NCBI GenBank assembly: GCA_024704765.1
Contig: JAKMXF010000350.1
Span: 108,972 to 172,971 of the forward strand
DNA length: 64,000 nt
Direction of reading: 5' to 3'
DNA from: Oopsacas minuta
Taxonomy: Eukaryota > Animalia > Porifera
Shown here: one piece after another, positions 1,589 through 17,000 of the stretch
How the letters are laid out: each line of letters starts with the position of its first letter
Position numbering within the stretch: position 1 is the first letter of the stretch
The notes under the pieces: generated by a model
The model's database searches: none
The model's input: the letters and a program-made list of their open reading frames with translations, nothing else
What the model was told of the DNA's origin: nothing
Position numbers and translations under genes: made by a program

Positions 1589-4500
1589 TGACATCTCTAA
1601 ATTAGAACATGTTCGTTACGTCTTCTAAGTTCTAATCACTGTAGCGTTCAATATTCTGTTACCAAAGCGAATATTGAACTAACCTTACCTAATATCAATT
1701 CATATCATACTACATTATAATCTAATTCAACGGTTCAACTTAAATCGTTGAGACGTTACAGCAATTAAAGTACTATTACAATTAACTTAAAATTGCATAT
1801 CGAATTGCCCTTTATGCTACGAAATAATTTTAGGATATCAAAAATCAGATTTTATGCATATCTTGGATATGAAATAAATTTAAATAAACAAGCTTGATGT
1901 ACACTAAATAATAGATCAATAGCTCAATTAACACAATATTAATCTCACATAAAGTAATCCTCCAAGCGGGTAGCGTTAGTCTCTAGCTTTTCCCGTTCAT
2001 TATTCAAGTCTGCTTTGGCAATATTCATCTCATAAGTTTCTAGAGAGGTATGCACTTCCTGTTTACGAACCTCTGCATGAAGGGAATTCTCATCCCTCTT
2101 ATCGTCCATGGTAGTCATTTCCTCTAAAATGGAAAGCGTAGAAATTCACTAAATATTTTGAAAACATAATAGTCCTAGATAGGTCAGTCAGGGGCAGCAA
2201 TATCTTTAAAGAATAAGGTAGGGGCTGAGGGAGGACATAAATACACATCTCTCGTACAGCAATAAAAATCGCATATTATGACTTGGACAGCGAGATCTTG
2301 GTAAATACTATATCAACAGGGAGGGCAGATATGAGAACTGTAGGAATAACAAGATCTTTTGCACCGATAGTAGACGAACAACGTGGATAAAAGTTAATTT
2401 CCAATATTTTATACATAAGGATCAATGATAATAAATCTTCCTTAGAAATAATAAGATGATATATATTGTACAAGTGACTCAGTAGCGGTAAAATTCCAAT
2501 AATCCCATCTATATCCAATTTATCTTGTTTGGCTTTTTATGGTATCTAATTATTGGTAAATAATTATATAATAAATGACACAATTAATACTATCTATATC
2601 TGAGATTAGGTACGAGCTGAGCTAAGGTCAAAAGGTCCGTTGTGTTTATTATCATGAATATTAGCATCTTATGCCAGATGGGGCGTCACTGGAAATTTCT
2701 CCCTCGGGATAGAGGCCGATCTGAGGTCTAAACAAGGCGTGAAAGTTGGTATATCTGGCTCGGACCAAAAGTCAGCTGGGCCAAAATTCCGTGACAACCT
2801 CTGTATAGACTTTCTTCAAGCAGAACTTGGAATTTGGGTATCAAAAAGTCCGTTCCGTTGAGTGAAATAGAGAAGGCTTTGTTCTTTTTGTGATTGTGCC
2901 ATTAAAATTCTTGTAATTTTGTCATTCAAGTGAATATTCTTAGTGACAGGTTGTGGTTTTTCTCTGAGAGTAACAGGCTAGTGCTAGTGAAAGATAATTG
3001 TGGGAATAGGAATTATAGAAGGTTTAAACAACTTAGATCTAATATACTGTAATGCACAGATAATTATTCACGCTGCCACTAACACCAGCCAATAAAATTA
3101 CAAAAGGATTTGACTGAAACATTAAAGCAAGCCAATCCAAATCAAATCAAATCCACAACCTGGCGGTGTCACTGAGAAAAATTATACTCCTGACATTTGC
3201 TTCTAATTATATATTTTCACTTTTATAAAGAGATGCTTTAGTTCCATAGGCACTACAGGTTGAAGCCTTGAAGGTAGATATATTTGAAAATGTGTATTTC
3301 TGATTGCCACCATTAAACATATTGGAACAACAAAGTATATTTAATCGCCATCACTGACTGCTCATTATTTGCAATCATTCTATTCTAGAGTTCTGTTTAT
3401 TTGTGTTTGGTTTTCTTTTCTTTTCTATTTGCTCATTAGCTAATACCGAATATATGTCGTCGAGTGATAGCTATTCTAGTACAAGGGTACATTCTCCAAG
3501 AGTCTGTTGATAATTCAATCACATCTAGTGTATCATATTCAGAAGACTACAGGAGTAACTCACCTCCTCCTGTCGATGCTCCCTATGCTACCATCTCACC
3601 TCTGACATCACTTCCACCTGAACCCACATCTTCCCAGCACCAGTCAGTCCATCTACACCGGGGATATCGGGTGTCTCTTCAGTCTGAATTCGCACATGTG
3701 GGATCGCAATCTCAAGACCTACCCTTCCCGACCTACAAAGCGAGTGGGTCGCCCTCATAAGCGTCTCTACGGTTTCCAACGCTGTTAGCATACCAAGTAC
3801 CACCTTAGAGCCAGACCAAGCAGCAAAGCCCACTCACAAGCCTTGACTATGTCGCTGCTAATTACTCTACAGTAATCTTCCAGAATCGGGAATCAACACC
3901 TAGTAAGCTGTCATCTGGTCCGCAGGTACTACTCAATCATGTGGCAGGGATTCATTCAAGCTGCCCTACAGGAGATAACTCATGGTGTCGTTGGAAAAAC
4001 ACTTCTGGTACTATAGCTGTTCTTTCAACATCTGTCCTAACAGCTAATAGGTCTCATATTAGAATCAGCACTGGTACTTTTGGAATTGATTGATATATTT
4101 TTTGACTTGATTGAAACTTTTGAGCACTGCTATCGCTGTTCTAACGTTCAACGATTGGTAGCTGTCAATAATCGGTATTCTTGACGGACTGGGTCTGTCT
4201 CCTACCTGTAAGGAGTACAATTCTATCCTGAAGAGAGAATATATGTCGGATTATTCCGAAAAGGACACTTTTCCAGAGAAGAAGACGGATGCGATACGTC
4301 GAACAGCACAGAGAAAAGCCTTGTAAAAATCTGAGGGCAGGAGAAACTACAGAGGAGAGGGTTTGTAGCAGAGAGTGTACCATAGGAGAAGAAGCGACTG
4401 GGTAGGGTTCGAGGATGGAGAAGACGGAGTGGTGCAAAGAGGAGAATGAAAGAGCGCAATGTCTCTCCTAATTCGTGCAACAGTTTCGGCGAGTCTGATA

Positions 4501-4959
4501 CCCTGTCCAGCATATTGTTTTGACGAAAATAGTCCCCCGGACCAATTTCGTCAAATTAGATTATTTCGTCAAATTAGATTATTTCGTGGCAGGAAAAACT
4601 AGTCAGGACTTCAGGAGTAATACAGGCATTAGTCATTAAAGATAATGAGTTAGGTGAAATTTTACAAAATGTCCAGCCGACAGACTGGTAGTGCAACACA
4701 GGGTTATGTATGTATTCTTTTCAGGGGGCACGCCTCCCTGACCCCCGTGTAAATGCCACAATGCATCGGAACTGAATGATTTTTGGCTCCTAAGTCGGAT
4801 AAATGTTTCAGGATTTTCATGATTATTCGTCCTCTAATGTACTTCCTGTCCTATCTTCAAATCTTATTGATAGAATTCCTAATAATTACCTTACAATTAC
4901 CTCATGCCTAACTTTTGAAGCGAAATCTGTAGCATCAATTTGAAATATGTTCAAAAAGG

Positions 4960-5680
4960 CACGAAAATATGATTAATCATATGATAAATAATTTAGCTAT
5001 AGATTTGAAAATGTCAAAATTGAAATCTACATACTTGATTACCCCTTACTAGCAGTTAAAACGAATTCTCTAGCATGATTTTGAATAATATGCACAAAGG
5101 TGTGAAATACGATTAATCATATAATAAATAATTTAGCTATATATTTGAAAATGTCAAAATTGAAATCTACATACTTGATTACCCCTTACTAGCAGTTAAA
5201 ACGAATTCTCTAGCATGATTTTGAATAATATGCACAAAGGTGTGAAATACGATTAATCATATAATAAATAATTTAGCTATATATTTGAAAATGTCAAAAT
5301 TGAAATCTACATACTTGATTACCCCTTACTAGCAGTTAAAACGAATTCTCTAGCATGATTTTGAATAATATGCACAAAGGTGTGAAATACGATTAATCAT
5401 ATGATAAATCATTTAGCAATAGATTTGAAAATGTCAAAATTGAAATCTACATACTTGATTACCCCTTACTAGCAGTTAAAACGAATTCTCTAGCATGATT
5501 TTGAATAATATGCACAAAGGTGTGAAATACGATTAATCATATGATAAATAATTTAGCTATATATTTGAAAATGTCAAAATTGAAATCTACATACTTGATT
5601 ACCCCTTACCAGCAGTTAAAACGAAATCTCTAGCATGATTTTGGAATAAAATAGAAAGGTGTGATAACATGATTAATCAC
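4960..5680. repeat. Tandem array of ~140-bp units (~5 copies)
   Basis: gattaatca recurs at 4971, 5111, 5251, 5391, 5531 and 5671; units are nearly identical. Confidence 0.95.
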
Positions 5681-5788
5681 GAAAAGGTGTGATATATTCA
5701 CAAATTCTAACTCGATGTGCAATCTCAGACCTTAAAAGTATTTGTATGTCAATTCTCTGATAAATTCGGCTTTTAGATGATGCTAGAT

Positions 5789-6014
5789 CAGGTTTAGCAG
5801 GTTTAGCCTGTTTAACAGGTTAAGCAGGTTAAGCAGGTTAAACCGGTTTAGCAGGTTTAACCGGTTTAGCAGGTTAAACCGGTTTAGTAGGTTAAACAGG
5901 TTTAGCAGGTTTAGCCTGTTTAACCGGTTTAACAGGTTAAGCCGGTTAAGCAGGTTTAACCGGTTTAGCAGGTTTAGCCTGTTTAACCGGTTTAACAGGT
6001 TTGCCGGTTTTGCA
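5789..6014. repeat. 9-bp minisatellite (GGTTTAGCA / GGTTAAGCA / GGTTTAACC variants)
   Basis: About 25 degenerate 9-mers read directly, containing AACCGGTT palindromes. Confidence 0.9.
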
Positions 6015-6019
6015 GATTG

Positions 6020-6500
6020 GTCGCATTTTTAATTTTCTCATATGTAAATTTATTGTTGTTTTTAAATGTTGAAATCTCGAAATATACTCAGAGACTTGCT
6101 CCCAATGGACATATAGGGGTAATCAAGTACGCTGATTCCGAATTTCGCATTTTCAAGTTTCTCATATGTAAATTTATTGTTGTTTTTATGAATACAAAGT
6201 AAACAAATTTCAAAATTGAAGTAGAATCATACTTTCAACGACTATCCTGGGGTAATCGAGTATGCTGAGTCCGAATATGATATTGTAAACAACATATTGT
6301 GAATATTTGTTTACTTTTAGGTCCATAAAGTAAACAAACTTCAAAATTGTTGTAGAAACATACTTTCAATGGTTATACTGAGGTAATCGTGTATGCTGAG
6401 TCCAAATATGGTATTGTGAACAACATATTGTGAATATTTGTTTACCTTTAGGTACATGAAGTAAACAAATTTCAAATTTTCAGAGTATACTTGTTTTGAC
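6020..6500 (+). repeat. Internally duplicated fragment of a dispersed Helitron-like repeat family
   Basis: catatgtaaatttattgttgtttt...ggggtaatcgagtatgctgagtccgaatatgatatt recurs here and at ~22040-22370, ~32040-32370 and ~43325-43640. Confidence 0.7.
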
Positions 6501-7231
6501 TTAAAGCTAAGAATCGTACTATCAACACATCCATTAGCAACAGTATAGATAACAGGGTTCTTAAGAGTATCCAAAGATAACATATCAGTTTAGCTGTTAT
6601 AGAAATCGTAGTAAATGCTAAAAACGAATACTTGATACTAAGATAGGTTCATCAAATTCGAATTGAATAGTTCCGACATCGTACAAATAAATATCCAGGT
6701 GCATGTCTAGATGAGAAAATACATATAGGCACCCATTTCAGACTTTCGCACTACAGCCATGCAGACGTACGGATATCTCTATATAGGGTATTCACTAAAA
6801 AATAACCATCAAGGGTGCAACAAAATGTCCTGTAATGAGATGTTGGTATCCACATTATAAACACGAATAAATCACATAAATGACTACCGCACAGAACATC
6901 CCAAATATACACATAAATACATAATACAAACATGTATGTATTATGAGTTGCCACTATTGAATGTTCCAATCTGGTTGAAGAAAACCAGTGTCGGAGGCAT
7001 TGTCCCATCCCAATTAGGGAACCCAGTGGAATTTGTCTCCCAATCTCCTGTGGAGTTATATATATATCTAGTCGGTCAAAGATACTGCAGTAGACTTCTC
7101 TCCTTTATACTCATTTTGCGTTTAAGACATATGTATATTAAAATCGTTAGCGCCTCAAAGATTAAGCAGCTCATTGGGCCGTACAAATTCCAGGCGTTAG
7201 AATATAGATTATTCCCAGTGGACCCATAGAT

Positions 7232-7915
7232 CAGTGGTTCTCAAACTGGGGTATGCCAGCACTTTTCCTAGGAGTACGCCGGTGTTTCACCTAATCATAT
7301 ACAAATATTTCGAGTTGCACTCCATTATGTCAACAGACTCAGCACATAGATAGTAATTTCATGCCAAATAATTAATATGTATCAGTTGCAATGGTTTCAT
7401 CACTAATTATTATCACCTTTGAATATTTATTGTTTGAGGTTATGCTAATTAAGGATTCCATTGTCCATAAATATGTGTCAACTCATATTAATTTCAATAT
7501 CACACCCACCCGTGTATCGTATTGTTCTTATAAAATGGAATAAAATGGAAATTGGAAGAGTATTTCTTTGAGACCTTAACTTTATTACCAAATTCATATG
7601 GAATCTGCTAAGAACGGAAATATAATGAAGATTATATCAAATATGGATTTATATCCATACTTAAAGAGGGGACGGGAACTACCACAATGTGTAATATGTT
7701 ATAAGGTGCTATCTGAGGGCTCGATGGAACCAAGTTTTCTAAAACACCATTTAAGCGGGTACCACCAAAATCTTGCAGATAAGGATATAGATTCCTTCAA
7801 GGACCAAGAGGTTGGAGTAAAACGAATCCGTATAGATCACAGAGAACAATTGAGTCAACAGACTCAAGCAGGTCTTCGTGCCTCGCACATGGTGGCTTTG
7901 CGAATCGCTACGTAG
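7232..7915 (+). mobile_element. Truncated hAT (Buster/Charlie, ZBED5-like) transposon: 5' TIR plus BED-finger fragment
   Basis: CAGTGGTTCTCAAAC terminus at 7232; ORF 7598-7915 has PQCVICYKVLSEGSMEPSFLKHHLSGYH (BED zinc finger); no right TIR found. Confidence 0.75.
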
Positions 7916-7986
7916 AGTTATGAAAGGGAAAGTAAAGAAAATGAAATATAGAAAAACACACAAAGATAGAGTTGTATATACGTATA

Positions 7987-8892
7987 TCAAAATAATTGTA
8001 GACAGTTTACAGTATGCTCACACACAACTATAACTCTATCATGATAGTCTACTGTTACTGATGTTGGATGCTCAGAAACTGGAATATTGTGAATTGATTG
8101 GAATTCAGGATTGAAGATAGAAATAGAATTAGAAGCATAATCAGCAATTAGAATGTTGTTAGAATTGTCAATAGAGAATGAGTAGGGATTAAGGACTTGA
8201 TTTCCTGGACCGAGTGAAATTACACTCTTCTGGAGTATGTGGTTATGATTGAATAGATGGATACAAGGATTAGATTCATCTAACACATAAATGTATTCTT
8301 TAGAGAGTTTAACATCAAGAGGGTGTGTGAATGAACCAAATAGTGATTTGAATATGAAATCTTTTGAGAGTATTTGAACTCGATTGTTAGAATAATCACA
8401 AATATAAATATCATCATTAGATTCATTCATTACCATAACACAGGGATTGTAGAATTCGAATTCTCCTTTTCCTGGTTTACCAATTCTAGAAATAAATTCA
8501 CCATCAAGGTTATAATTCAGTATACCGTGGTTATGAGAAATTAGAATCCTACTCATACAAATAAATAAACTTATTGGATAGGACATCTTTCCTTCACCTC
8601 TACTGTCACCAAATTTGAATATATATTTAGCAGTACTGTCGAATACTTTAACACAGTGGTTCAAACAATCTGCTATATAAATATTTCCAGTCATGTTTTC
8701 AACTGTAACAAAAAGTGGACTGTTAAGTTCATCATTTTCTTCTCCTCTCTTACTAGCACATACTAGAGGTTGTATCCTACTTGTGTGATCAATTACAGTT
8801 TTCACTCTCTCTGGTTCAATAGGAGTAGCTGTGGCCATGGTCGCTAAATTTATAGAAAGAGGAAGTATACCTGAAATGAGCTCAGATTGCAT
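7987..8892 (-). CDS. NHL-repeat (six-bladed beta-propeller) protein, 301 aa, single exon
   Basis: Repeated NHL motifs: GNIYIADCLNHCVKVFD, DIYICDYSNNRVQIL, NILIADYASNSISIFN, G.GEFxNP. Confidence 0.85.
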   Translation of the reverse strand: MQSELISGILPLSINLATMATATPIEPERVKTVIDHTSRIQPLVCASKRGEENDELNSPLFVTVENMTGNIYIADCLNHCVKVFDSTAKYIFKFGDSRGEGKMSYPISLFICMSRILISHNHGILNYNLDGEFISRIGKPGKGEFEFYNPCVMVMNESNDDIYICDYSNNRVQILSKDFIFKSLFGSFTHPLDVKLSKEYIYVLDESNPCIHLFNHNHILQKSVISLGPGNQVLNPYSFSIDNSNNILIADYASNSISIFNPEFQSIHNIPVSEHPTSVTVDYHDRVIVVCEHTVNCLQLF

Positions 8893-8907
8893 TGTAGAAT
8901 ACTATAG

Positions 8908-11900
8908 CATAGTGTGCCAAAATCGCCATAATGGAGTATTAGGGTAACCATTACAACTAGGCATGTTTTAGGTGGTCTATATAGTAAATCGACACCGTAA
9001 ATTTCAAAAATTCATTTAAATTTCCGTAGTATTACCACTATTGGGAATATGACGTCATTTCGGTGATTTCATTATATTTAACATTCATGGTTCAATAATA
9101 TTATTTGTGAATTCTATTATTGAATTAATGGTATAAAGTCAAGTTTCCCATTAGAAGGATTATAGCATATATATAACTAACTATTATATAATAAGGAAGC
9201 AGGGGTGTAGTTTTTCCCTTTACTACATATTTGAGGGGATTATACCTTGTGGAAAACTTACTAAATATATAAACTCAATCTCTAATATTCTTTAATTAAT
9301 TATCATTCTCCAACACTATGCTATTATATAAGATATCTTGGGGGCTATTTGGGTCATTTGCACTAGAATTCCTCGTCTTGGTGGATGTAAAACGATTCTG
9401 CACTAATAGGGGATCACGACAACACAGAAGGCGAACTAGAATATCTCGTACATTGTCAGAGAATGATGTTTTCTGGCAAGATTTTCCCGATACCGCCTCA
9501 GGAACATATTACAAGCTTCTAAACATTCTTCTGATAGATTCTGTAATCCCCTGCCATTATTATAGTCTCCAATAATCTTGAAAGAATGGGAAAGTAGCTT
9601 GTGTAAAGAGGAGGTGATGTTCGCCCATGGAAACTGAACTAAGATGTATTCATACGTTTCTTTACATAATTCTTCCATGTTGCTATAATTGATTAAGTTA
9701 CCGCTGTTCACAAGTCGTAACACCACGGATAGATTAGTCTGGATCTTCTATCATAAGGGTTTATCAGATGGATTAATCGAGGAAGTCGCCCATTTTAAAA
9801 AGTTTCGCTGATCCATAAAGCAATCACGTGCAATGTTCCCAGTAGTTGATGTACCACCCTGACTTGAAGGAATATCCACACTGAAACTACACTTCTCTAA
9901 AAGAATTGCTCGAATCTGCAGATAGATGCATTTACTTTGTGATTAGATGGTGACCATACCTTGTGACCCGCATCAAGATGGTATATTAATAACATATACC
10001 ACCGGAATACACATAGGTAGGCATGCAAAGGGGAGGCAGCAATTATATTGATGTCAGAGGTGGGTTTGTGAGTTATACCCAAGCGTTGTTTGGATGGGAG
10101 TTTGAGGAAGTCATCCTCATTAACATCATCAAAGAGCTACCAAGCATCGCTAATTAACCTGTTTATGGGGAATCCAGAACGAATCCAGTCAATGCTTTTA
10201 ATTTCTTCATCAGATGCAGTACATAGATGACAAGAAGCTCCTCCAGCACCATCTAACAGTCCAGCCATTTTGGTGTCAAAGAGAGAACGGACAATATCAA
10301 CTTGCACATGTCCTCCTATTAGGGATAATCTGTTCACCAATATTTGGTCGGTTTGGGGATTGACAATTTTATCCATGATAAAATGAACATTATTATAATC
10401 ATCTTCCAATGTTATCAACGCAACCGGTCTGAAATAAAAGGGGGAGTTAGGAGAATGGTTGTAGAAGACATTCTTTCCAAGTGTATCTGCTATTGATAAT
10501 ATTCTGAATCCAAATAAGATGAAATATTTAGTACTAAAGACAGGGTTATTATTTTGTTGGTTATAGGTGCGATGAGACCCGGAACCATCTAATCCATCTG
10601 ATATCTTAACTGTGAGCGGATATTGTGAAATAGAAATTGGCACTAACGTTGAAATCAAGCGTTCGACTGTAAGCTTTAGTATCGAATGATAGGAGATACA
10701 AGTTCCAATTGAGAAACCTTCAGGATCATGGACTATCTCAATCTCATCAATCAAAGTTATTTCTCTACGATATCTGGAGATAAGCTTATAGGATGGTAAT
10801 TTTACTTGACATTTAAGGACTTTTTAAAATTTTTATATTTGCTCGCTCCAATCTCTAAACAGTCCAACAGAAAGGCAGATTTATCGATTGGCGCTTTGTG
10901 CAAGATTCCACTAAAAGAACCCTTGTTGATGATCTCCTTACACACTTGTGAGGTATCGCGATCGTAAGAATTGTTAGATATTAATTCTAAAGCCAGAGCA
11001 GCTAGTTGTTTAGGCTCGACATTTTCTCTTTCAGCTAAGAAATGAATATTATCTAAAAGAATGCTCAGTCTAGAATTGGAAGTTTGAAGATTGCAATCAA
11101 GTAATTGCTTTCTGGAATCATGGACAATTTCTTCAGAGAAATTTCGACTTTCAGAAATAGAAACTCTACGAAAAGGTTCTAATCCAGGATCGAGTGAAAT
11201 TCTCTTCTTTCTCGGAATGGAAGTTGATAGAGGTGTAGTATATGATGGAAGGTCAAATTCTCCCAAGTCTCAAGATCACTTTTCTTCTGGTAATACTCTC
11301 TGGATGATATAAGGGACTTGAACTTATATAGAATAGTATCATGCTCTTCCTGTAAAATATTATTATCATCAATAAGATACTGCGCAGTGGCTTTAGGGCT
11401 TTTGCCCATTGAAATATAGCTAACATATGCTTCTTTGTTGGTCACAACAGAGGCCATTACTTCACTGGGAGCTATTATTAGATAGAAAAGATTAAAATTA
11501 TTTTCGTACATCATCTAAATTTACAGGAGGGCAAGAATTTATAGAATTTACTTGAATTTCAAAAAAATTCTAAAAATACATTTTCCGATTTTTTGTCCGG
11601 TCCAAGCATTGATGTACTCAAAATATATTTGTGCACCCCGGTGCACGTATGAAATTGGTGTATAATTTCAAAAATGTAAACACTAAGCGATTAACAATAA
11701 ATTATCGTCCTCTTTTGTCACCTGATAGATGCAGCACTCCAAACACTATGTTAAAACTAAAATATTTCCCTCCAGGCCTTTAAAACTAGACAGCCAAACA
11801 AATTTTTTTAAAACATTGATACTAATAATAATTGCATAACTGTTCTAATATACGAAATACGTCAAATTGATGATTAACTACAAACGTTATATAGTATATA

Positions 11901-12045
11901 TTCGGAAGAAAATCGTTGCTAAGGTAGGTATGAGTCATACATACAATCATCAATATTTTCCTACTAATTCGACGATGGAGATTTACAAAACGTAGTTAAA
12001 TTCGTAATTGAAATTTTGCCTAATACGCCATATCGGCACACTGTG
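8908..12045 (-). mobile_element. Full-length RAG1-like / Transib-superfamily DNA transposon (3138 bp) with heptamer-led TIRs and 5-bp TSD
   Basis: TSD TATAG at 8903-8907 and 12046-12050; left end CATAGTGTGCC..., right end (reverse complement) CACAGTGTGCC...; internal RAG1-core-like coding sequence. Confidence 0.9.
9296..11514 (-). pseudogene. RAG1-like (RAG1L/Transib) transposase, ~740 codons, with frameshifts and stops
   Basis: Joined ORFs give KISDGLDGSG (first D), SLFDTKMAGLLDGAGGASCHLC (second D, CxxC), GGTSTTGNIARDCF, LHKLLSH (Zn His pair) and SEECLEACNMFLRRYRENLARK (E). Lesions: frameshifts ~11260, ~10815, ~9915, ~9470; stops 10137-10139 and 9748-9753. Confidence 0.9.
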
Positions 12046-14061
12046 TATAGTAGCCGGAACAGCGTGCAGATTGGGGGATCTGAGTTGAACACATATTCTG
12101 ATGATCTAAATATTAGTGTGTGAAACTTGCAGAGAAGCCGTAGATCAGAAATGTCTATGGTTAGTGTCATTCTAGCATGAGGTAATGGGATTGCCGGTTA
12201 CGAACAGGATGGAGGTTGGGTATCCTGTTGGAACAAATACGAATTCTATCAAATTACTAAGTGTGTGAAACGAGCAAGGGTACTATATATCCATGGTTTG
12301 TGTGATTCTGGTATACAAGAGGGCTACTCATAGGGCGCATGCATTAGTCCAAATTCGTATGTATGTATTAGTCCTAATTTTTGGTGATCGAATGCATGCA
12401 TTCACGGGGAAATTTCGTCGCGAGGAAATATAGTCATTTACTATTGTTGTTTTGAATCTAAAACTCTCAGCAACTCACAGCCTGCTCCAGATCCAACTCG
12501 AATCCAATCTAACACCACACCAGTTATCTAAATAGTCTACTGAAATGCTCATGTTCTCAGCTCAAGCCAATCTAACTAGATAATCCACGAAAATACCAAT
12601 TCTAGCACTTTCCAACGTGAGTTCTAAATACACTCAGCAACTCACAATATAAGATTGAAGAATATCGACGCAAAGGAGGTAAAACTAACGTAAACATCAC
12701 CAAAAAATTTGGACTAATGACGCGACCCCCTACTCATGTAAATAATGAGAATTTAGTACACGAAAAAAGAAAGAATATAGCAATGAGTCAAAATGTTAAA
12801 CGCGGGATTTCTTTGGAAATTAGTGGGGGAAGCAAAGCTCCCCCTACATTACACCCCTCAATTATATACCCCCGACAAATGGTTCTGGGCGGAGAGTTAT
12901 GACGACTGACCAATGTATCCGTCAGGTTTACACATTTTACCAAAATTACAGGACTATACAACTATTCCCAGTAAACCTGGAGCTGGACAATAGCGTACAT
13001 AAAATTACCTTCGACAACATTGAATACATTGTATGGATAGGTCATAGATAGGTGTCCTCAGTACTTTAATACAGGGTCTGGTCATGTATGCAAGCATGTA
13101 ATCCTTGGTAGAGGATTTAGTAACAACTTTGCGATAGTAATATTAACAGAATAATTATAAACTCTATTTATACGCGTTTTGTAACTATCACCTTATATAA
13201 TTTATTATGTCTAAGTAAGACTGATATACAAATTTTGGTATACAAATATTTCATCCAACGAATTATTCTGAACATTTGATCTTTTATTACAGTCTCGATG
13301 TATTTCTCTACTTCAATAGCTTGGCTTCTAGCACAAATTTGTATATTTCAACTTTTCTTATTATCAGGTATTAATTTACTTCATTGTTATACTACCACTA
13401 ATCCGAACTGATTCTACCAATTTCAATTGAGGTTCGGATTAGTAGAAAAGGTCGATATTTATTGTAGTTATATACATACCTACTAACTCCTGGGACTTTC
13501 GAAAAATTCCCTGTACTCCCCAGTTTTGCAATCCATAATTAACAATTTCAAGCTTTTCTTGGGGAAATTAGTACATAAATATTCAAATATTTTCCTGGAT
13601 TCTCTTGTAAAATCCTGGGAAGGTTGGCAAGTTTGCATCTATGAATGTAGGGCCATTTCGTAAAGCATGCGACACTGTGAATAGATTATACTGGAAATTC
13701 CTGTTATACGAAAGTTCTCAAAGATATGGCGTATGCTGATCTTTGACAATCATACTAATTCTTGTAACTTTTGATTTAGCGCCCATCACTTATATATTTT
13801 TATCGTTCAAATTCTCCAATTGGTTAGCTTATAAGAGAGATAATATAGCTAAGACTTGAACAACCTGAAAACCTAACTTTGGGACATTACTCTATGCCAT
13901 TAGATTATTAATCGTGGTTTGTACCCTATAGGCCTCTCAACTATCCAGAATTTGATTTCTCTATTATAAATAGTGTTGATTTTATTTATTTAAGCTCACG
14001 TTTGCCTCTCGCTTGTTGATGCATCATACATTTTATAGTGTATATTCTATTTCTCTTCTAG

Positions 14062-17000
14062 CTACCCTCGATACAGTACATTTACGAATAACGTCAGCTG
14101 GCAGAAAGCACATAGTATCACTAGACACATTATCTTCAGGTGTTAGCCTACTCTGTTCAGTAGAAGCATACACTACCCCTGCTATAACATGGTACTATAA
14201 CAACTCTATTATAGTATCTCCTAACTACACTGACACATCGTCAATTGCTAACAATGGTATCACACAAATACATAATACATTATATGTAATACACACAGGT
14301 GTGTATTACTGTAGAGCAAGTGTAGCACTAGGTTCTATCAGATCTGATGATAACTCTATTGAATTATTTGGTTAGTTTTGTTACTAGTACTTTTATTCTA
14401 GTTTTATTAATTGTATAATTGCTAATTAATTATATAGCATAGTCTCGTGTCCCTCTGGGAATGTATTATATTAATTTATCTGTCTTCTCTAATTGATAAT
14501 GCATACTCCTGACTGGTTTCAAATACATTTACCATTCTAGTCTTGTTAAGATATCGACAGCCCTCAATGGAGTCAGATACCTTAATAATTCTTGTTCACA
14601 TTCTGACATTTGATAAGTGTCTTGAATTTATATCTTTGTATTCGCCGTATTGTTATTTTAATACAATGGAGCTTCCGAACCATGCATGAGTTTTGGAGAG
14701 GTTGTCCCTTCAAGGCGATTCTTTGATATATTATCTATGACGTACATATTTGTAGTTTACAATCTACTCAATACGCATCCTCTCTTTGACAACTGCTTTC
14801 GCTGTATCTGGATTTCGCATTAACCAGAGTAATTCCAATATTGTAGAAACCTTATTTTGTTCAAATAGTTGTTCGTCTTATCCGGAAATTCGTATTAACC
14901 GTGTTCGTATAATTTATAATACTTCATTCATCTGCTCTAGCATTTACACTTTACTACTATATCACTATTTATAGCTCCTCCTGATGTAATTACATTACAA
15001 ACACAGAACCCAACATTAACTATACCACATAGCTGGAGTATTACACTACCTTGTCTGTTTACTTATCAACCCTACTTCTCTATAACTTGGTGGTATAATC
15101 AGAATGTATTGATATCTCACAACAACCGTTATATATCTCATAACGGAAACTTACACATATATCAAGCAAGCACTGACTTTACTGGATTCTATAACTGCAC
15201 TGTAGTTAACAAGTTTACTAATGAATCCTTCTCTGGACCTTCAATCAAGCTATTCGTTAGCAAACGTGAGTTAAATTATTTTACTATTTGAAGAGCATTC
15301 AATGCACTTTATAAACGCGATTAGACACAAAGATTACACCTTTAATATTTATTGGATACCTCATGATATCGATATTATCGACTCTCCGATCTGTCAATTA
15401 TCTGGCTTAGCATCGATTGATTTATACTTACTCTAGGGGTTTGAATATAATACCCAAGAACTAACTACGATAACATTATCGAAATAGAAGTACCGATATT
15501 CCATAGAATCCTGCTATTTCATGAAAACAACCGGTAAAGTAAGCGCATAGAAGAAATCTAGAAATTCATAAGCAAGGGGTCTGTATATTAGTCGTTAGTA
15601 GAATAATTCCAATAGGATTTGTATTAAATATTTTAGCTTAGTAAGAAGTAGAATCTCTTTATAATGAACAAGCTCTTTGACCTTCGGTATAAATATACAA
15701 CCCTGTTTACAATATTTAAGAATTTTATTATAAGTACTCTAAACTTTGTCTAATATCATTATAATTATATAATTATCCATAATCGGGTCTATCTACTGAT
15801 GACTGCATTTATTCAGGTCAAAAGTGTGCCATTTAGCATTATCAAAATATATAGAATTGTTTTAGATATTTACTGTTCTAGTTTATCCCTAGTCCAAATG
15901 TATTAATTACATCGGAAATTAGTGTGTATAGCTGTCATCATGTTGAATTAATCCTAATTTTCCAGTTTGTGAAAAGTTAATTAATTCTTATTTTTTACGC
16001 GAAATATTTTGGCCAAATTGGACTCACAAGATATCTCTGCAAACTATATTATAATTATTATCGGCTCTGGTAATCGGATCACTTTGGGTTTAGCTGATAA
16101 TTAATCGGTGACCCAATAAGCATATGTTACTGAACTTATATGGAGGCCATGCAGTCAGTGCTGTCTTTCGACACGATAAATCTTGAGACGAGTACCTCAA
16201 CTACTAATAAACTGTAGAGAGGAATTTGTGAAAGAGTTTCCCCCTCAAGCGATCTAGCCCGAGTGCTCATTTTTCTAGAATAATAATTTTATAAATGCTG
16301 AAACGAAATTTATTACTCTATCCTTCTCAGTTAATCTTCAAGTCCACAACACAATCTCTCCAATACAACAACCCAGCATTATATACGTATATCCTGACAG
16401 TGTATTTAACCTGGAATATAACAGATACTATGAGCCTCTCTACAATATTACATGGCTGCTTCAAGAACAGAGTAATCAGCGTATGGCTCCTGAGATATCT
16501 AATATAACCATCTCTACTAATTACACAGCTGTTGTGTTTACAGGAGTACAAGAGCAAAGCAGCACTCAAATACAAGTTAAAATTATTTGTGAGTTATTTA
16601 TTTACTATTGTAGTTGCTTCTTTTGTTTACTCCTATTATTCACATAGTCCTTGCGCTTGTTTTACTGCTTCTCATTATCTTAATTCAATATTTTCTCATA
16701 AAGTGTATGTACCCTAGGTCTAGGGCAGTGGAACCTTTTTTCACCATGGACCCCCTATATTCAGCTTTTGGGGTCCACTGATCTCCTGTCATTAACGTTA
16801 GTGCAAACTATGGGGAGTCATAGACTCCTTCTGGGCCGCTAACACCAGTTGAGAACAACTCACACCAGTCATCGTTGCTAGTTTCTGTATATTCCTTCTG
16901 TTACACATAGTGTACCTAAACAACAAACAAATATGAAAATATAATCCTCGAAACTTTGATATTACAAAGCTCCAATACACCCATTTGATAACTCAGTATT

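Follow-up and report, generated by a model that had tools for sequence, protein, structure and literature searches.

The 3138-bp element that we read directly at positions 8908-12045 of the window (the whole 64-kb stretch analysed, from Oopsacas minuta contig JAKMXF010000350.1) is, judging from its sequence, very probably a Transib superfamily DNA transposon, present as a fixed and decayed copy in this glass sponge. The first-pass annotation had suspected an early-branching animal host, and O. minuta, which belongs to Hexactinellida, is one. The element has defined ends, a target-site duplication (TSD), multiple copies in the genome, homology to the Transib/RAG1 transposases and retained catalytic residues. 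It is an ordinary member of Transib, and its main interest lies at the family level, in the layout of the ends.

The termini read CATAGTGTGCC at 8908-8918 on the plus strand and CACAGTGTGCC at 12045-12035 on the minus strand, and within the 64-kb window the exact 11-mer CAYAGTGTGCC occurs only at these two ends. The features at the borders are as follows.

8903-8907, no strand: TSD copy beside the 3' end of the element, TATAG on the plus strand and CTATA in transposase orientation, identical to 12046-12050
8908-8943, minus strand: 3' TIR, long form; along the plus strand inwards, heptamer CATAGTG (8908-8914), 16-bp spacer (8915-8930) and 13-bp block ATGGAGTATTAGG (8931-8943)
12019-12045, minus strand: 5' TIR, short form; heptamer CACAGTG (12045-12039), 7-bp spacer (12038-12032) and 13-bp block ATGGCGTATTAGG (12031-12019)
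12046-12050, no strand: TSD copy beside the 5' end of the element, TATAG on the plus strand, read directly

By our own calculation, the chance of a 5-bp flank match is about 0.0015 at a GC content of about 0.35. Both junctions were bridged, with 0-1 mismatch, by contigs of four public DNA runs from one sample; the kind of run is unrecorded, and contigs of up to 107 kb indicate DNA. The junction contigs had approximately single-copy depth, while the element itself was read at roughly 3-30 times the depth of the single-copy flank. No empty-site joint across 8907/12046 was among the joints listed for these four runs of the one sample, and no further copies or miniature derivatives were found within the 64-kb window.

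It could be argued that chance alone produced the TATAG match and the heptamer-like ends, with the true boundaries elsewhere or no discrete element at all: TATAG is AT-rich within an AT-rich genome, and there is one additional near-match to the 11-mer, at 16906. However, the latter site has neither a block motif nor transposase similarity nearby, and we regard it as a chance match. Comparison with other copies refutes coincidence and leaves it a negligible probability. Locus L001 of assembly GCA_024704765.1 corresponds to window 3436-16376 with 100% identity, and four more copies of the same family (family 1, L002-L005) show pairwise identities of 93-95.7%. All four begin at the same base as the window copy, the three that keep both ends (L003-L005) also finish at the same base, and the flanks diverge immediately outside. 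Two of these three carry perfect 5-bp duplications of their own (CCATG in L003, CAGTA in L004), while the flanks of L005, AGCCC and AGGAG, do not match. In related families, L008 and L011 are flanked by perfect duplications (CAACA and GGGCC, respectively), which brings the perfect, differing duplications to four other insertions in three families. The flanks of L007 match at 4 of 5 positions, L009 has both ends complete yet flanks without a match, and at L010 (ENA) and L012 element ends were not definable. Because the other copies share the exact termini and two of them carry their own 5-bp duplications, the boundaries and the duplication are real, as first annotated.

The gene between these ends was read in three frames, with the following features.

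9296-11457, minus strand: Transib transposase pseudogene of about 720 codons, likely start ATG at 11457 (MASVV...), stop at 9298-9296
10805-11245, minus strand: N-terminal helical NBD-like region, aligning with the RAG1 nonamer-binding and dimerisation domains, outside the crystallised HzTransib construct
10587-10589, minus strand: first catalytic Asp (LDGSG), equivalent to RAG1 D600; column D56 in alignment A1, nearly invariant; aligns with RAG1 and HzTransib
10275-10277, minus strand: second catalytic Asp (LFDTK), equivalent to RAG1 D708; A1 columns D160 and K162
10230-10232, minus strand: codon of the invariant Cys (A1 column C175) in the CHLC zinc ligands right after the second Asp
9517-9519, minus strand: catalytic Glu (SEECLEACN), equivalent to RAG1 E962; aligned to HzTransib, BbRAG1L and RAG1

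The claim that the element encodes a RAG1-core-like transposase was borne out by homology, with the gene broken in many places. It is colinear over element nucleotides 601-2747 with intact proteins of 700-712 aa at 40-46% identity. Single pieces matched the solved HzTransib structure 6PQN with E-values of 1.2e-7 and 3.9e-8, against 0.041 for BbRAG1L and 0.016 for Pfam RAG1, the last being a sub-threshold match on the last piece only when the pieces were searched separately. Neither the N-terminal piece (10805-11266) nor piece 9900-10136 gave a meaningful match in PDB phmmer searches. Profiles were needed, single pieces being short and diverged too far, and two family profiles gave 1.9e-19 and 1e-66 for HzTransib, 5e-8 and 4.5e-36 for BbRAG1L, and 4e-5 and 1.8e-23 for RAG1. 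The nearest ESM Atlas clusters carried RAG1_RNase_H and ZnC2. By alignment, the DDE triad and the ZnC2/ZnH2 ligands are retained; the zinc ligands, including HKLLSH, align to RAG1 C727/C730 and H937/H942. The family profile alignment spans mouse RAG1 residues 368-1000. For a model of moderate confidence of the near-identical L004 ORF (pLDDT 65.7), the best 14 PDB matches consisted without exception of RAG1 chains and the isolated NBD 3GNA, at Foldseek E-values of 0.7-3, which faintly hints at an NBD-like fold of the N-terminal region. The GRPR motif of RAG1 is absent from the family, being SRKQL here and RKPL in relatives.

The first-pass annotation had placed the element in the "RAG1L/Transib lineage". 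That it is a once-mobilised member of the Transib/RAG1 superfamily, as its TSD proves, stood; a RAG1L/ProtoRAG affiliation did not, as the order of profile similarity and the lack of a RAG2-like gene indicate Transib proper. We considered whether the element might be a RAGL (ProtoRAG-type) transposon or remnant that once had a RAG2L partner and is closer to vertebrate RAG than Transib is. Its heptamer CACAGTG equals the RSS consensus, the NBD-like N-terminal region lies within the alignment to RAG1 368-1000, vertebrate RAG1 fragments top the ESM Atlas feature search, and a six-bladed NHL propeller gene adjoins the element. However, the 3.1-kb element fits one gene only: it holds a single long broken frame, and its other ORFs, all ≤85 aa, have no Pfam match. 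No second gene was found between the ends in the four O. minuta families sampled, and the N-terminus is not Cys-rich. The CCGHC (CX2CX3GHX4C) C-terminal clamp is absent from all three frames of the element and from the tails of its close relatives P0182, P0185 and P0192; the distant relatives P0110, P0126 and P0153 do carry the motif, and a variant of it occurs in P0203, P0202 and P0195. The NHL gene was rejected as a RAG2 analogue: it lies beyond the TIR and the TSD, it stands in tandem with the transposase gene, both on one strand, whereas RAGL genes lie tail-to-tail, and beside another Transib locus stands a different NHL paralogue, only 30% identical. Finally, HzTransib scores far above BbRAG1L, which in turn scores above RAG1, this order of profile E-values serving as a proxy for placement relative to RAG1 and RAG1L. 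The RAGL reading is thereby largely refuted and retains a very slim chance. We assign the element to Transib because it has neither a RAG2-like gene nor a CCGHC tail.

As for the state of the copy, we compared the five family-1 copies and located the following breaks.

11458-12018, minus strand: 5' leader, lacking 76 bp at about 11931 that are present in all four other copies
11246, minus strand: break 1, private 1-bp deletion, frame 0 to 2 (five-copy alignment)
10826-10830, minus strand: break 2, A/T run with 1 base fewer than its counterpart in L003 and L004, frame 2 to 1, common to L002 and L005
10137-10139, minus strand: break 3, in-frame TAG, a Gln codon (CAA) in every other copy (copy alignment)
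9922, minus strand: break 4, private 1-bp deletion with adjacent substitutions, frame 1 to 0 (five-copy alignment)
9747-9752, minus strand: break 5, private double stop TGA TAG, where other copies have TTA GAG (copy alignment)
9472, minus strand: break 6, loss of 1 bp from an A run, frame 0 to 2, directly past the catalytic Glu motif

Public reads show the same two base differences at break 3, and near break 6 about half of the read depth carries an insertion at 9468. In total, the window copy has about 5 frameshifts, three in-frame stops, the 76-bp leader deletion and, in the 3' heptamer, a private change of CAC to CAT. "Complete", as the element was first called, therefore holds for the ends, but not for the gene or for the one heptamer that has lost its essential CAC. 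The copy can no longer make transposase and is a dead fossil without a function of its own. A domesticated RAG1-like host gene was also considered and is ruled out by the broken frame, the multi-copy element, and the TIRs and TSD.

The copy might still be mobilisable as a non-autonomous, live insertion moved by the transposase of an intact relative. The copy keeps its two ends and its two 13-bp blocks, none with more than one change, and related families in this genome have apparently intact Transib genes, namely P0182 (700 aa), P0179 and P0192 (638 aa), the P0192 element having perfect 11/11 ends and a GGGCC duplication. However, position 3 of the 3' heptamer is mutated from CAC to CAT, and Transib ends invariably have CAC, which is also essential to RSSs (PMC1131882). 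Moreover, none of the intact relatives is a family-1 member: their families, at 40-46% identity, have a differing 13-bp block, for example GGAAATAGG versus CGTATTAGG, and all five family-1 copies sampled are dead. The single-copy depth of the junction contigs and the lack of an empty-site joint among those listed point the same way. We consider continued mobility quite improbable, and the CAT-heptamer end is probably uncleavable even with transposase supplied in trans.

The dead window copy is one among many copies and families, and far less remarkable than first thought. The O. minuta annotation contains dozens of such proteins, some automatically named "V(D)J recombination-activating protein" or "DNA-mediated transposase", and 397 homologues were counted in the representative library. 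In a tree that left out RAG1, RAG1L, HzTransib and Chapaev, the copy, read through with X at each break, grouped with 11 O. minuta proteins in a clade of 100% support.

The ends showed a regular architecture across the four O. minuta Transib families, whose mutual protein identity is 40-46%. The consensus heptamer of family 1 is CACAGTG at both ends, the CATAGTG of the window copy being its private mutation. In all four families a 13-bp subterminal block stands 7 bp past the 5' heptamer and 16 bp past the 3' heptamer; the 7+16+13 layout at the 3' end recurs in L003-L005 and in families 2-4. The block sequence varies between families, in step at both ends. Because the spacer asymmetry is constant among families only 40-46% identical while the block varies in step, it provides comparative evidence for functional asymmetry, and the family keeps asymmetric two-part ends that recall the 12/23 rule. 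We infer that the 13-bp block is read by the NBD-like N-terminal region, and that the 7/16 asymmetry may have a role in pairing unlike ends. We tentatively propose, as a possibility we would not yet favour, that in the glass-sponge Transib clade an asymmetric two-signal end, with its block read by an NBD-like N-terminal domain, is obligatory even without RAG2. It is accepted that the RAG1 core and the recombination signal sequences derive from Transib, and the 9-bp spacer asymmetry bears on the origin of the 12/23 rule. If the proposal were true, metazoan Transib transposases would long have paired unlike signals in the manner of that rule, including those of one of the earliest-branching animal lineages, and such pairing would be an innovation linked neither to RAG2 nor to bilaterians. 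The youngest-looking sponge elements would offer a tractable system for this question.

The most probable history of the copy is the following. An active source element would have encoded a transposase of about 720 aa, with an RNase-H-fold DDE core and a ZnC2/ZnH2 module in common with RAG1. The enzyme would recognise two-part ends, with CACAGTG at the cleavage site and the 13-bp block 7 bp (5') or 16 bp (3') further in. By homology with HzTransib and RAG, excision would involve nicking and would leave hairpins on the flanking DNA, a course known for HzTransib (as summarised in preprint 10.1101/2023.08.20.553239), and the cut-and-paste chemistry of the sponge Transib would be analogous. The 3'-OH ends would then attack the target with a 5-bp stagger, here at CTATA, and repair of the stagger would give the TATAG duplication. 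Neutral drift since insertion has probably produced the frameshifts, stops, leader deletion and heptamer change.

The element adjoins an NHL-repeat ORF, 10 bp upstream of its first ATG, and the insertion may affect expression of that ORF. The window copy has also produced a spurious gene model, LOD99_9104. In the literature searched we found no description of Transib elements in sponges; the O. minuta genome paper lists Transib only inside the RepeatMasker class "Other (Mirage, P-element, Transib)", which makes up 1.22% of the genome. The bona fide hexactinellid insertions, with proven TSDs and in several diverged families, extend the documented range of the superfamily to Porifera.

We compared the sponge elements with four known systems. 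AanRAGL, reported as a RAGL element of the protist Aureococcus anophagefferens, has paired ends with two conserved elements and 4/13-bp spacers (Tao et al. 2022, PMC9435367). It has in common with the sponge family the 9-bp difference between ends and the 5-bp TSD; its two end elements are unrelated in sequence to the sponge ones, and the comparison is one of layouts that implies no homology of the ends. With amphioxus ProtoRAG (BbRAG1L-RAG2L, PDB 6B40) and other RAGL, the sponge elements share the superfamily, the CAC heptamer, the 5-bp TSD, asymmetric ends (27/31 in ProtoRAG) and a homologous catalytic core (BbRAG1L, 4.5e-36 with the family profile). Unlike them, the sponge family has no RAG2L, CCGHC clamp or RING/zinc N-terminal region, and ProtoRAG is more distant from it in sequence than HzTransib.

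Established Transib features include the 5-bp TSD, CAC heptamers, 12/23-like ends in some families and conserved nonamer-binding-region motifs (PMC1131882). RSS12/RSS23-like ends occur in Drosophila Transib5 and in Anopheles Transib2_AG and TransibN1-N3_AG (Kapitonov & Jurka 2005, PMC1131882). These insect families resemble the sponge elements in that the spacer is short at the 5' end and long at the 3' end, the heptamer is accompanied by another conserved motif, the TSD measures 5 bp, and the transposase, at about 700 aa, has conserved nonamer-binding-region motifs. In the sponge, however, the spacing to the 13-bp block is 7/16, or 12/21 if its last nine bases are counted as the "nonamer", so that the spacers differ by 9 bp and not by 11; the second motif resembles GGAAATAGG and is not A-rich, and conservation extends to the long spacer (AAATGG...).

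Among solved structures, HzTransib of Helicoverpa zea (PDB 6PQN and related entries) is the best relative in sequence, with 1e-66 by profile and 1e-7 to 1e-8 by single pieces. Identity is only about 25-30%, the sponge protein of about 720 aa carries about 165 residues N-terminal to the crystallised start, partly aligning to the RAG1 NBD, and the block stands at unequal distances (7/16) from the heptamer at the two sponge ends. In common, the two have the DDE triad, the zinc ligands, the order of DDBD, pre-RNH, RNH, ZnC2/ZnH2 and C-terminal domains, a single gene, CAC-heptamer ends and a 5-bp TSD.

Direct reading of positions 8700-12300 placed the element, a Transib copy whose transposase gene lies on the minus strand, between two copies of TATAG, with 3138 bp between them.

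Features of the element (window coordinates)
8903-8907 and 12046-12050, both sides of the element, target-site duplication (TSD) TATAG
8908-8918, plus strand, 3' terminus in transposase orientation, starts CATAGTGTGCC
12045-12035, minus strand, 5' terminus, starts CACAGTGTGCC
11457 (ATG) to 9298-9296 (stop), minus strand, transposase reading frame with several frame switches

Within the 64-kb window, exact matches to the 11-mer CAYAGTGTGCC are confined to these two termini, and no other copy of the element was found. A second shared block, ATGG[A/C]GTATTAGG, lies 16 bp past the heptamer at the 8908 end and 7 bp past it at the 12045 end. The calculated chance of a 5-bp flank match at a given site is ~0.0015 at the base composition of the window. 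Four public runs of a single sample gave contigs that bridge both junctions with 0-1 mismatch at about single-copy depth, and no empty-site joint was among the joints listed.

We fetched four further copies of the same family (family 1) via annotated fragments. The five copies are 93-95.7% identical pairwise, in a star-like pattern. The first base is the same in all four further copies, as is the last base in the three having both ends. Perfect duplications flank L003 (CCATG/CCATG) and L004 (CAGTA/CAGTA), and the flanks of L005 (AGCCC/AGGAG) do not match. Differing boundaries, which the first-pass annotation had named as evidence against its TATAG-bounded, heptamer-ended element, were not seen among these copies; direct reading, the shared termini and the other duplications confirm that element. 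Its boundaries and 5-bp duplication are thus real. Public-read depth within the element was ~3-30x that of unique flank, and therefore family 1 has many copies. Other mobile DNA interrupts two of the copies: L003 has a 2-kb insert (2507-4592) that carries a FAM200/ZBED5 RNase-like gene, and L005 has one of 1.3 kb (6000-7329) that carries an HTH_48 (mariner-type) ORF. Tc1/mariner and Harbinger-type DDE genes adjoin several loci.

To classify the element, we compared its gene with known transposases. Element nt 601-2747 are colinear with intact proteins of 700-712 aa (40-46% identity), and a fragment of the frame matches the annotated Oopsacas minuta protein KAI6646912.1. The locus fetched for this protein (GCA_024704765.1, JAKMXF010000350.1) matches window 3436-16376 at 100% identity, and therefore the window is the final 64 kb of JAKMXF010000350.1. 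Single gene pieces matched HzTransib of Helicoverpa zea (6PQN) at 1.2e-7 and 3.9e-8, amphioxus BbRAG1L (6B40) at 0.041 and Pfam RAG1 at 0.016. An exhaustive HMMER search returned 397 homologues. The RNase-H-region profile matched HzTransib, BbRAG1L and RAG1 at 1.9e-19, 5e-8 and ~4e-5, and the full-length family profile at 1e-66, 4.5e-36 and 1.8e-23, respectively. Two Asp and a Glu align with RAG1 D600, D708 and E962, and a CxxC and two His with C727/C730 and H937/H942; ESM Atlas neighbours carry RAG1_RNase_H and RAG1_ZnC2. The profile matches and the aligned catalytic and zinc residues bear out the earlier reading of a RAG1-core-like transposase.

That reading had also placed the element in a "RAG1L/Transib lineage", of which the Transib superfamily stands and RAG1L does not. 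No second gene was found inside the 3138 bp, and the element has neither the C-terminal CX2CX3GHX4C knuckle (CCGHC) of RAG1L-RAG2L transposons (RAGL) nor a Cys-rich transposase N-terminus. On these three absences, and with HzTransib as the best profile match ahead of BbRAG1L and RAG1, we rejected a RAG1L/RAGL identity; by sequence comparison the element is classed as Transib proper.

Defects of the element were called by comparison with the other family-1 copies.

Defects of the element (window coordinates)
~11931, 76-bp leader deletion, private to the element
~11246, 1-bp deletion, private to the element
~10828, A/T run one base short, common to L002 and L005
10139-10137, TAG vs CAA in other copies, private to the element
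~9922, 1-bp deletion, private to the element
9752-9747, TGA TAG vs TTA GAG in other copies, private to the element
~9472, 1-bp loss in an A run, absent from L003, L004 and L005
8908 end, heptamer CAC changed to CAT, private to the element

The differences at 10137/10139 recur in the public reads, in which other copies carry insertions at 9468 and 9918. The transposon had been called complete. Both ends are present, but the gene is broken by frameshifts and stops and the leader has a deletion; given these defects and that of the heptamer, "complete" fits the ends only. The element is an ordinary fossil Transib copy, not an intact one. All five sampled family-1 copies are dead. In L004, the least damaged, a single frame is open for 204 and 463 codons on either side of one stop, and there are also frameshifts near both ends of the gene. 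Pieces of Transib pseudogenes have entered public gene models at window 9436-10376 (LOD99_9104) and in L002 (LOD99_5342). UniRef calls one of these models 'Carbohydrate kinase FGGY C-terminal domain...', a name suggestive of a chimera.

Three further families share the layout of the ends: CACAGTG, 7 bp and a 13-bp block at the 5' end, and CACAGTG, 16 bp and the same block at the 3' end.

Families and their 13-bp blocks
Family 1: ATGGCGTATTAGG
Family 2 (L007, L008 and L006; ~71% DNA identity): ATGGGGAAATAGG
Family 3 (L009 2384-5381, JAKMXF010000017.1, 2998 bp; annotated product 700 aa): ATGTGGAAATAGG
Family 4 (L011 1926-5203, JAKMXF010000088.1, 3278 bp; 638-aa ORF LOD99_15206): CCCTGGAAATTGG at the 5' end, ACCTGGAAGTAGG at the 3' end

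The block varies between families and matches at both ends within each (nearly so in family 4), at constant spacing; the sequence of the long spacer is conserved too (AAATGG/AAATCG...). Taking the last nine block bases alone as a 'nonamer' gives spacers of 12 and 21. A block that changes in step at both ends, at fixed spacing, argues for a recognition site and for a constrained 7/16 asymmetry. The family-3 copy has 7/16 ends and differing flanks (AGTAC vs CCAAG), and its gene has one short intron or frameshift at ~3729-3780. The family-4 copy has perfect 11/11 ends and a perfect GC-rich duplication, GGGCC; with its single ORF, which starts ~75 residues later than in relatives, it is the youngest-looking Transib seen. 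This LOD99_15206 element and the 700-aa LOD99_10084 type are apparently intact natural relatives of the window copy. Seven of eight sampled 5' flanks in families 1 and 2 (window, L002-L004, L006-L008) are C-first and A/G-last in transposase orientation, which hints at a target preference C-N-N-N-R, unlike the GC-rich one reported for insect Transibs, in a sample too small to judge.

On mouse RAG1, the alignment of the family profile starts at residue 368 and takes in the nonamer-binding domain (NBD); the crystallised HzTransib sequence begins ~165 profile positions later. We modeled the natural 188-aa N-terminal ORF of L004 from a 20-row alignment and obtained moderate confidence (pLDDT 65.7; 72-87 for residues 90-140). 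Every one of the 14 best PDB matches was a RAG1 chain or the isolated NBD (3GNA), but at E 0.7-3. This gives moderate support to a predicted NBD-like DNA-binding region, the natural candidate for reading the 13-bp block.

The other long ORFs of the window encode animal proteins (CD36-family, chondroitin GalNAc-transferase-like and amino-acid transporter). A 301-aa NHL-repeat (six-bladed propeller) ORF (7987-8892, minus strand) starts 10 bp from the Transib duplication. At 20-100x the read depth of unique flank, it is part of a large gene family or repeat. The family-3 copy has an NHL neighbour too (L009 1373-2240), only 30% identical and at the opposite end of the element. Window 4915-5679 and 5790-6480 hold a tandem array with a period of ~140 bp (self-matches offset 140, 280, 420 and 560 bp, 87-94% identity) and, beside it, a second repetitive stretch with weaker matches at ~38400, 22300, 43500 and 32200. 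Just beyond the element, 12375-12756 is highly repeated (depth up to 28,000 vs ~100 unique); in public contigs it has many internal joints and continues in alternative ways.

The host had been guessed to be an early-branching animal, and it is the glass sponge Oopsacas minuta. Its annotation holds dozens of proteins related to the transposase, named 'hypothetical protein', 'Dna-mediated transposase' or, in UniRef, 'V(D)J recombination-activating protein'. In a quick maximum-likelihood tree, with the window copy read through and X placed at each break, this copy grouped with 11 O. minuta and 14 ENA proteins at 100% support and formed its own lineage within that clade, the nearest neighbour being 50% identical. 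Two ENA assemblies of similar GC (~0.36), ERZ25069837 (L006) and ERZ25072730 (L010), contain family-2 copies (85-91% identity). The closest full-length relatives also come from these assemblies; they are 712 aa long and their knuckle is a variant, CX2CX3GHX5C. According to the O. minuta genome paper, DNA transposons make up 15.44% of the genome and the RepeatMasker class 'Other (Mirage, P-element, Transib)' 1.22%, the latter given without discussion. In a full-text literature search, no description of Transib elements in sponges (Porifera) was found. More widely, the Transib clade of glass sponges is diverse, and its asymmetric, bipartite end is conserved.

Asymmetric ends such as those of the sponge Transibs are not unprecedented. 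In insects, Kapitonov and Jurka described Transib families whose 5' ends resemble RSS12 and whose 3' ends resemble RSS23 (PMC1131882), and according to a preprint (10.1101/2023.08.20.553239) asymmetric ends, the CCGHC tail and a GRPR/K nonamer-binding domain each occur among Transibs. The AanRAGL spacers of 4/13 differ by 9 bp, the same difference as in the 7/16 of the sponge Transibs (PMC9435367).
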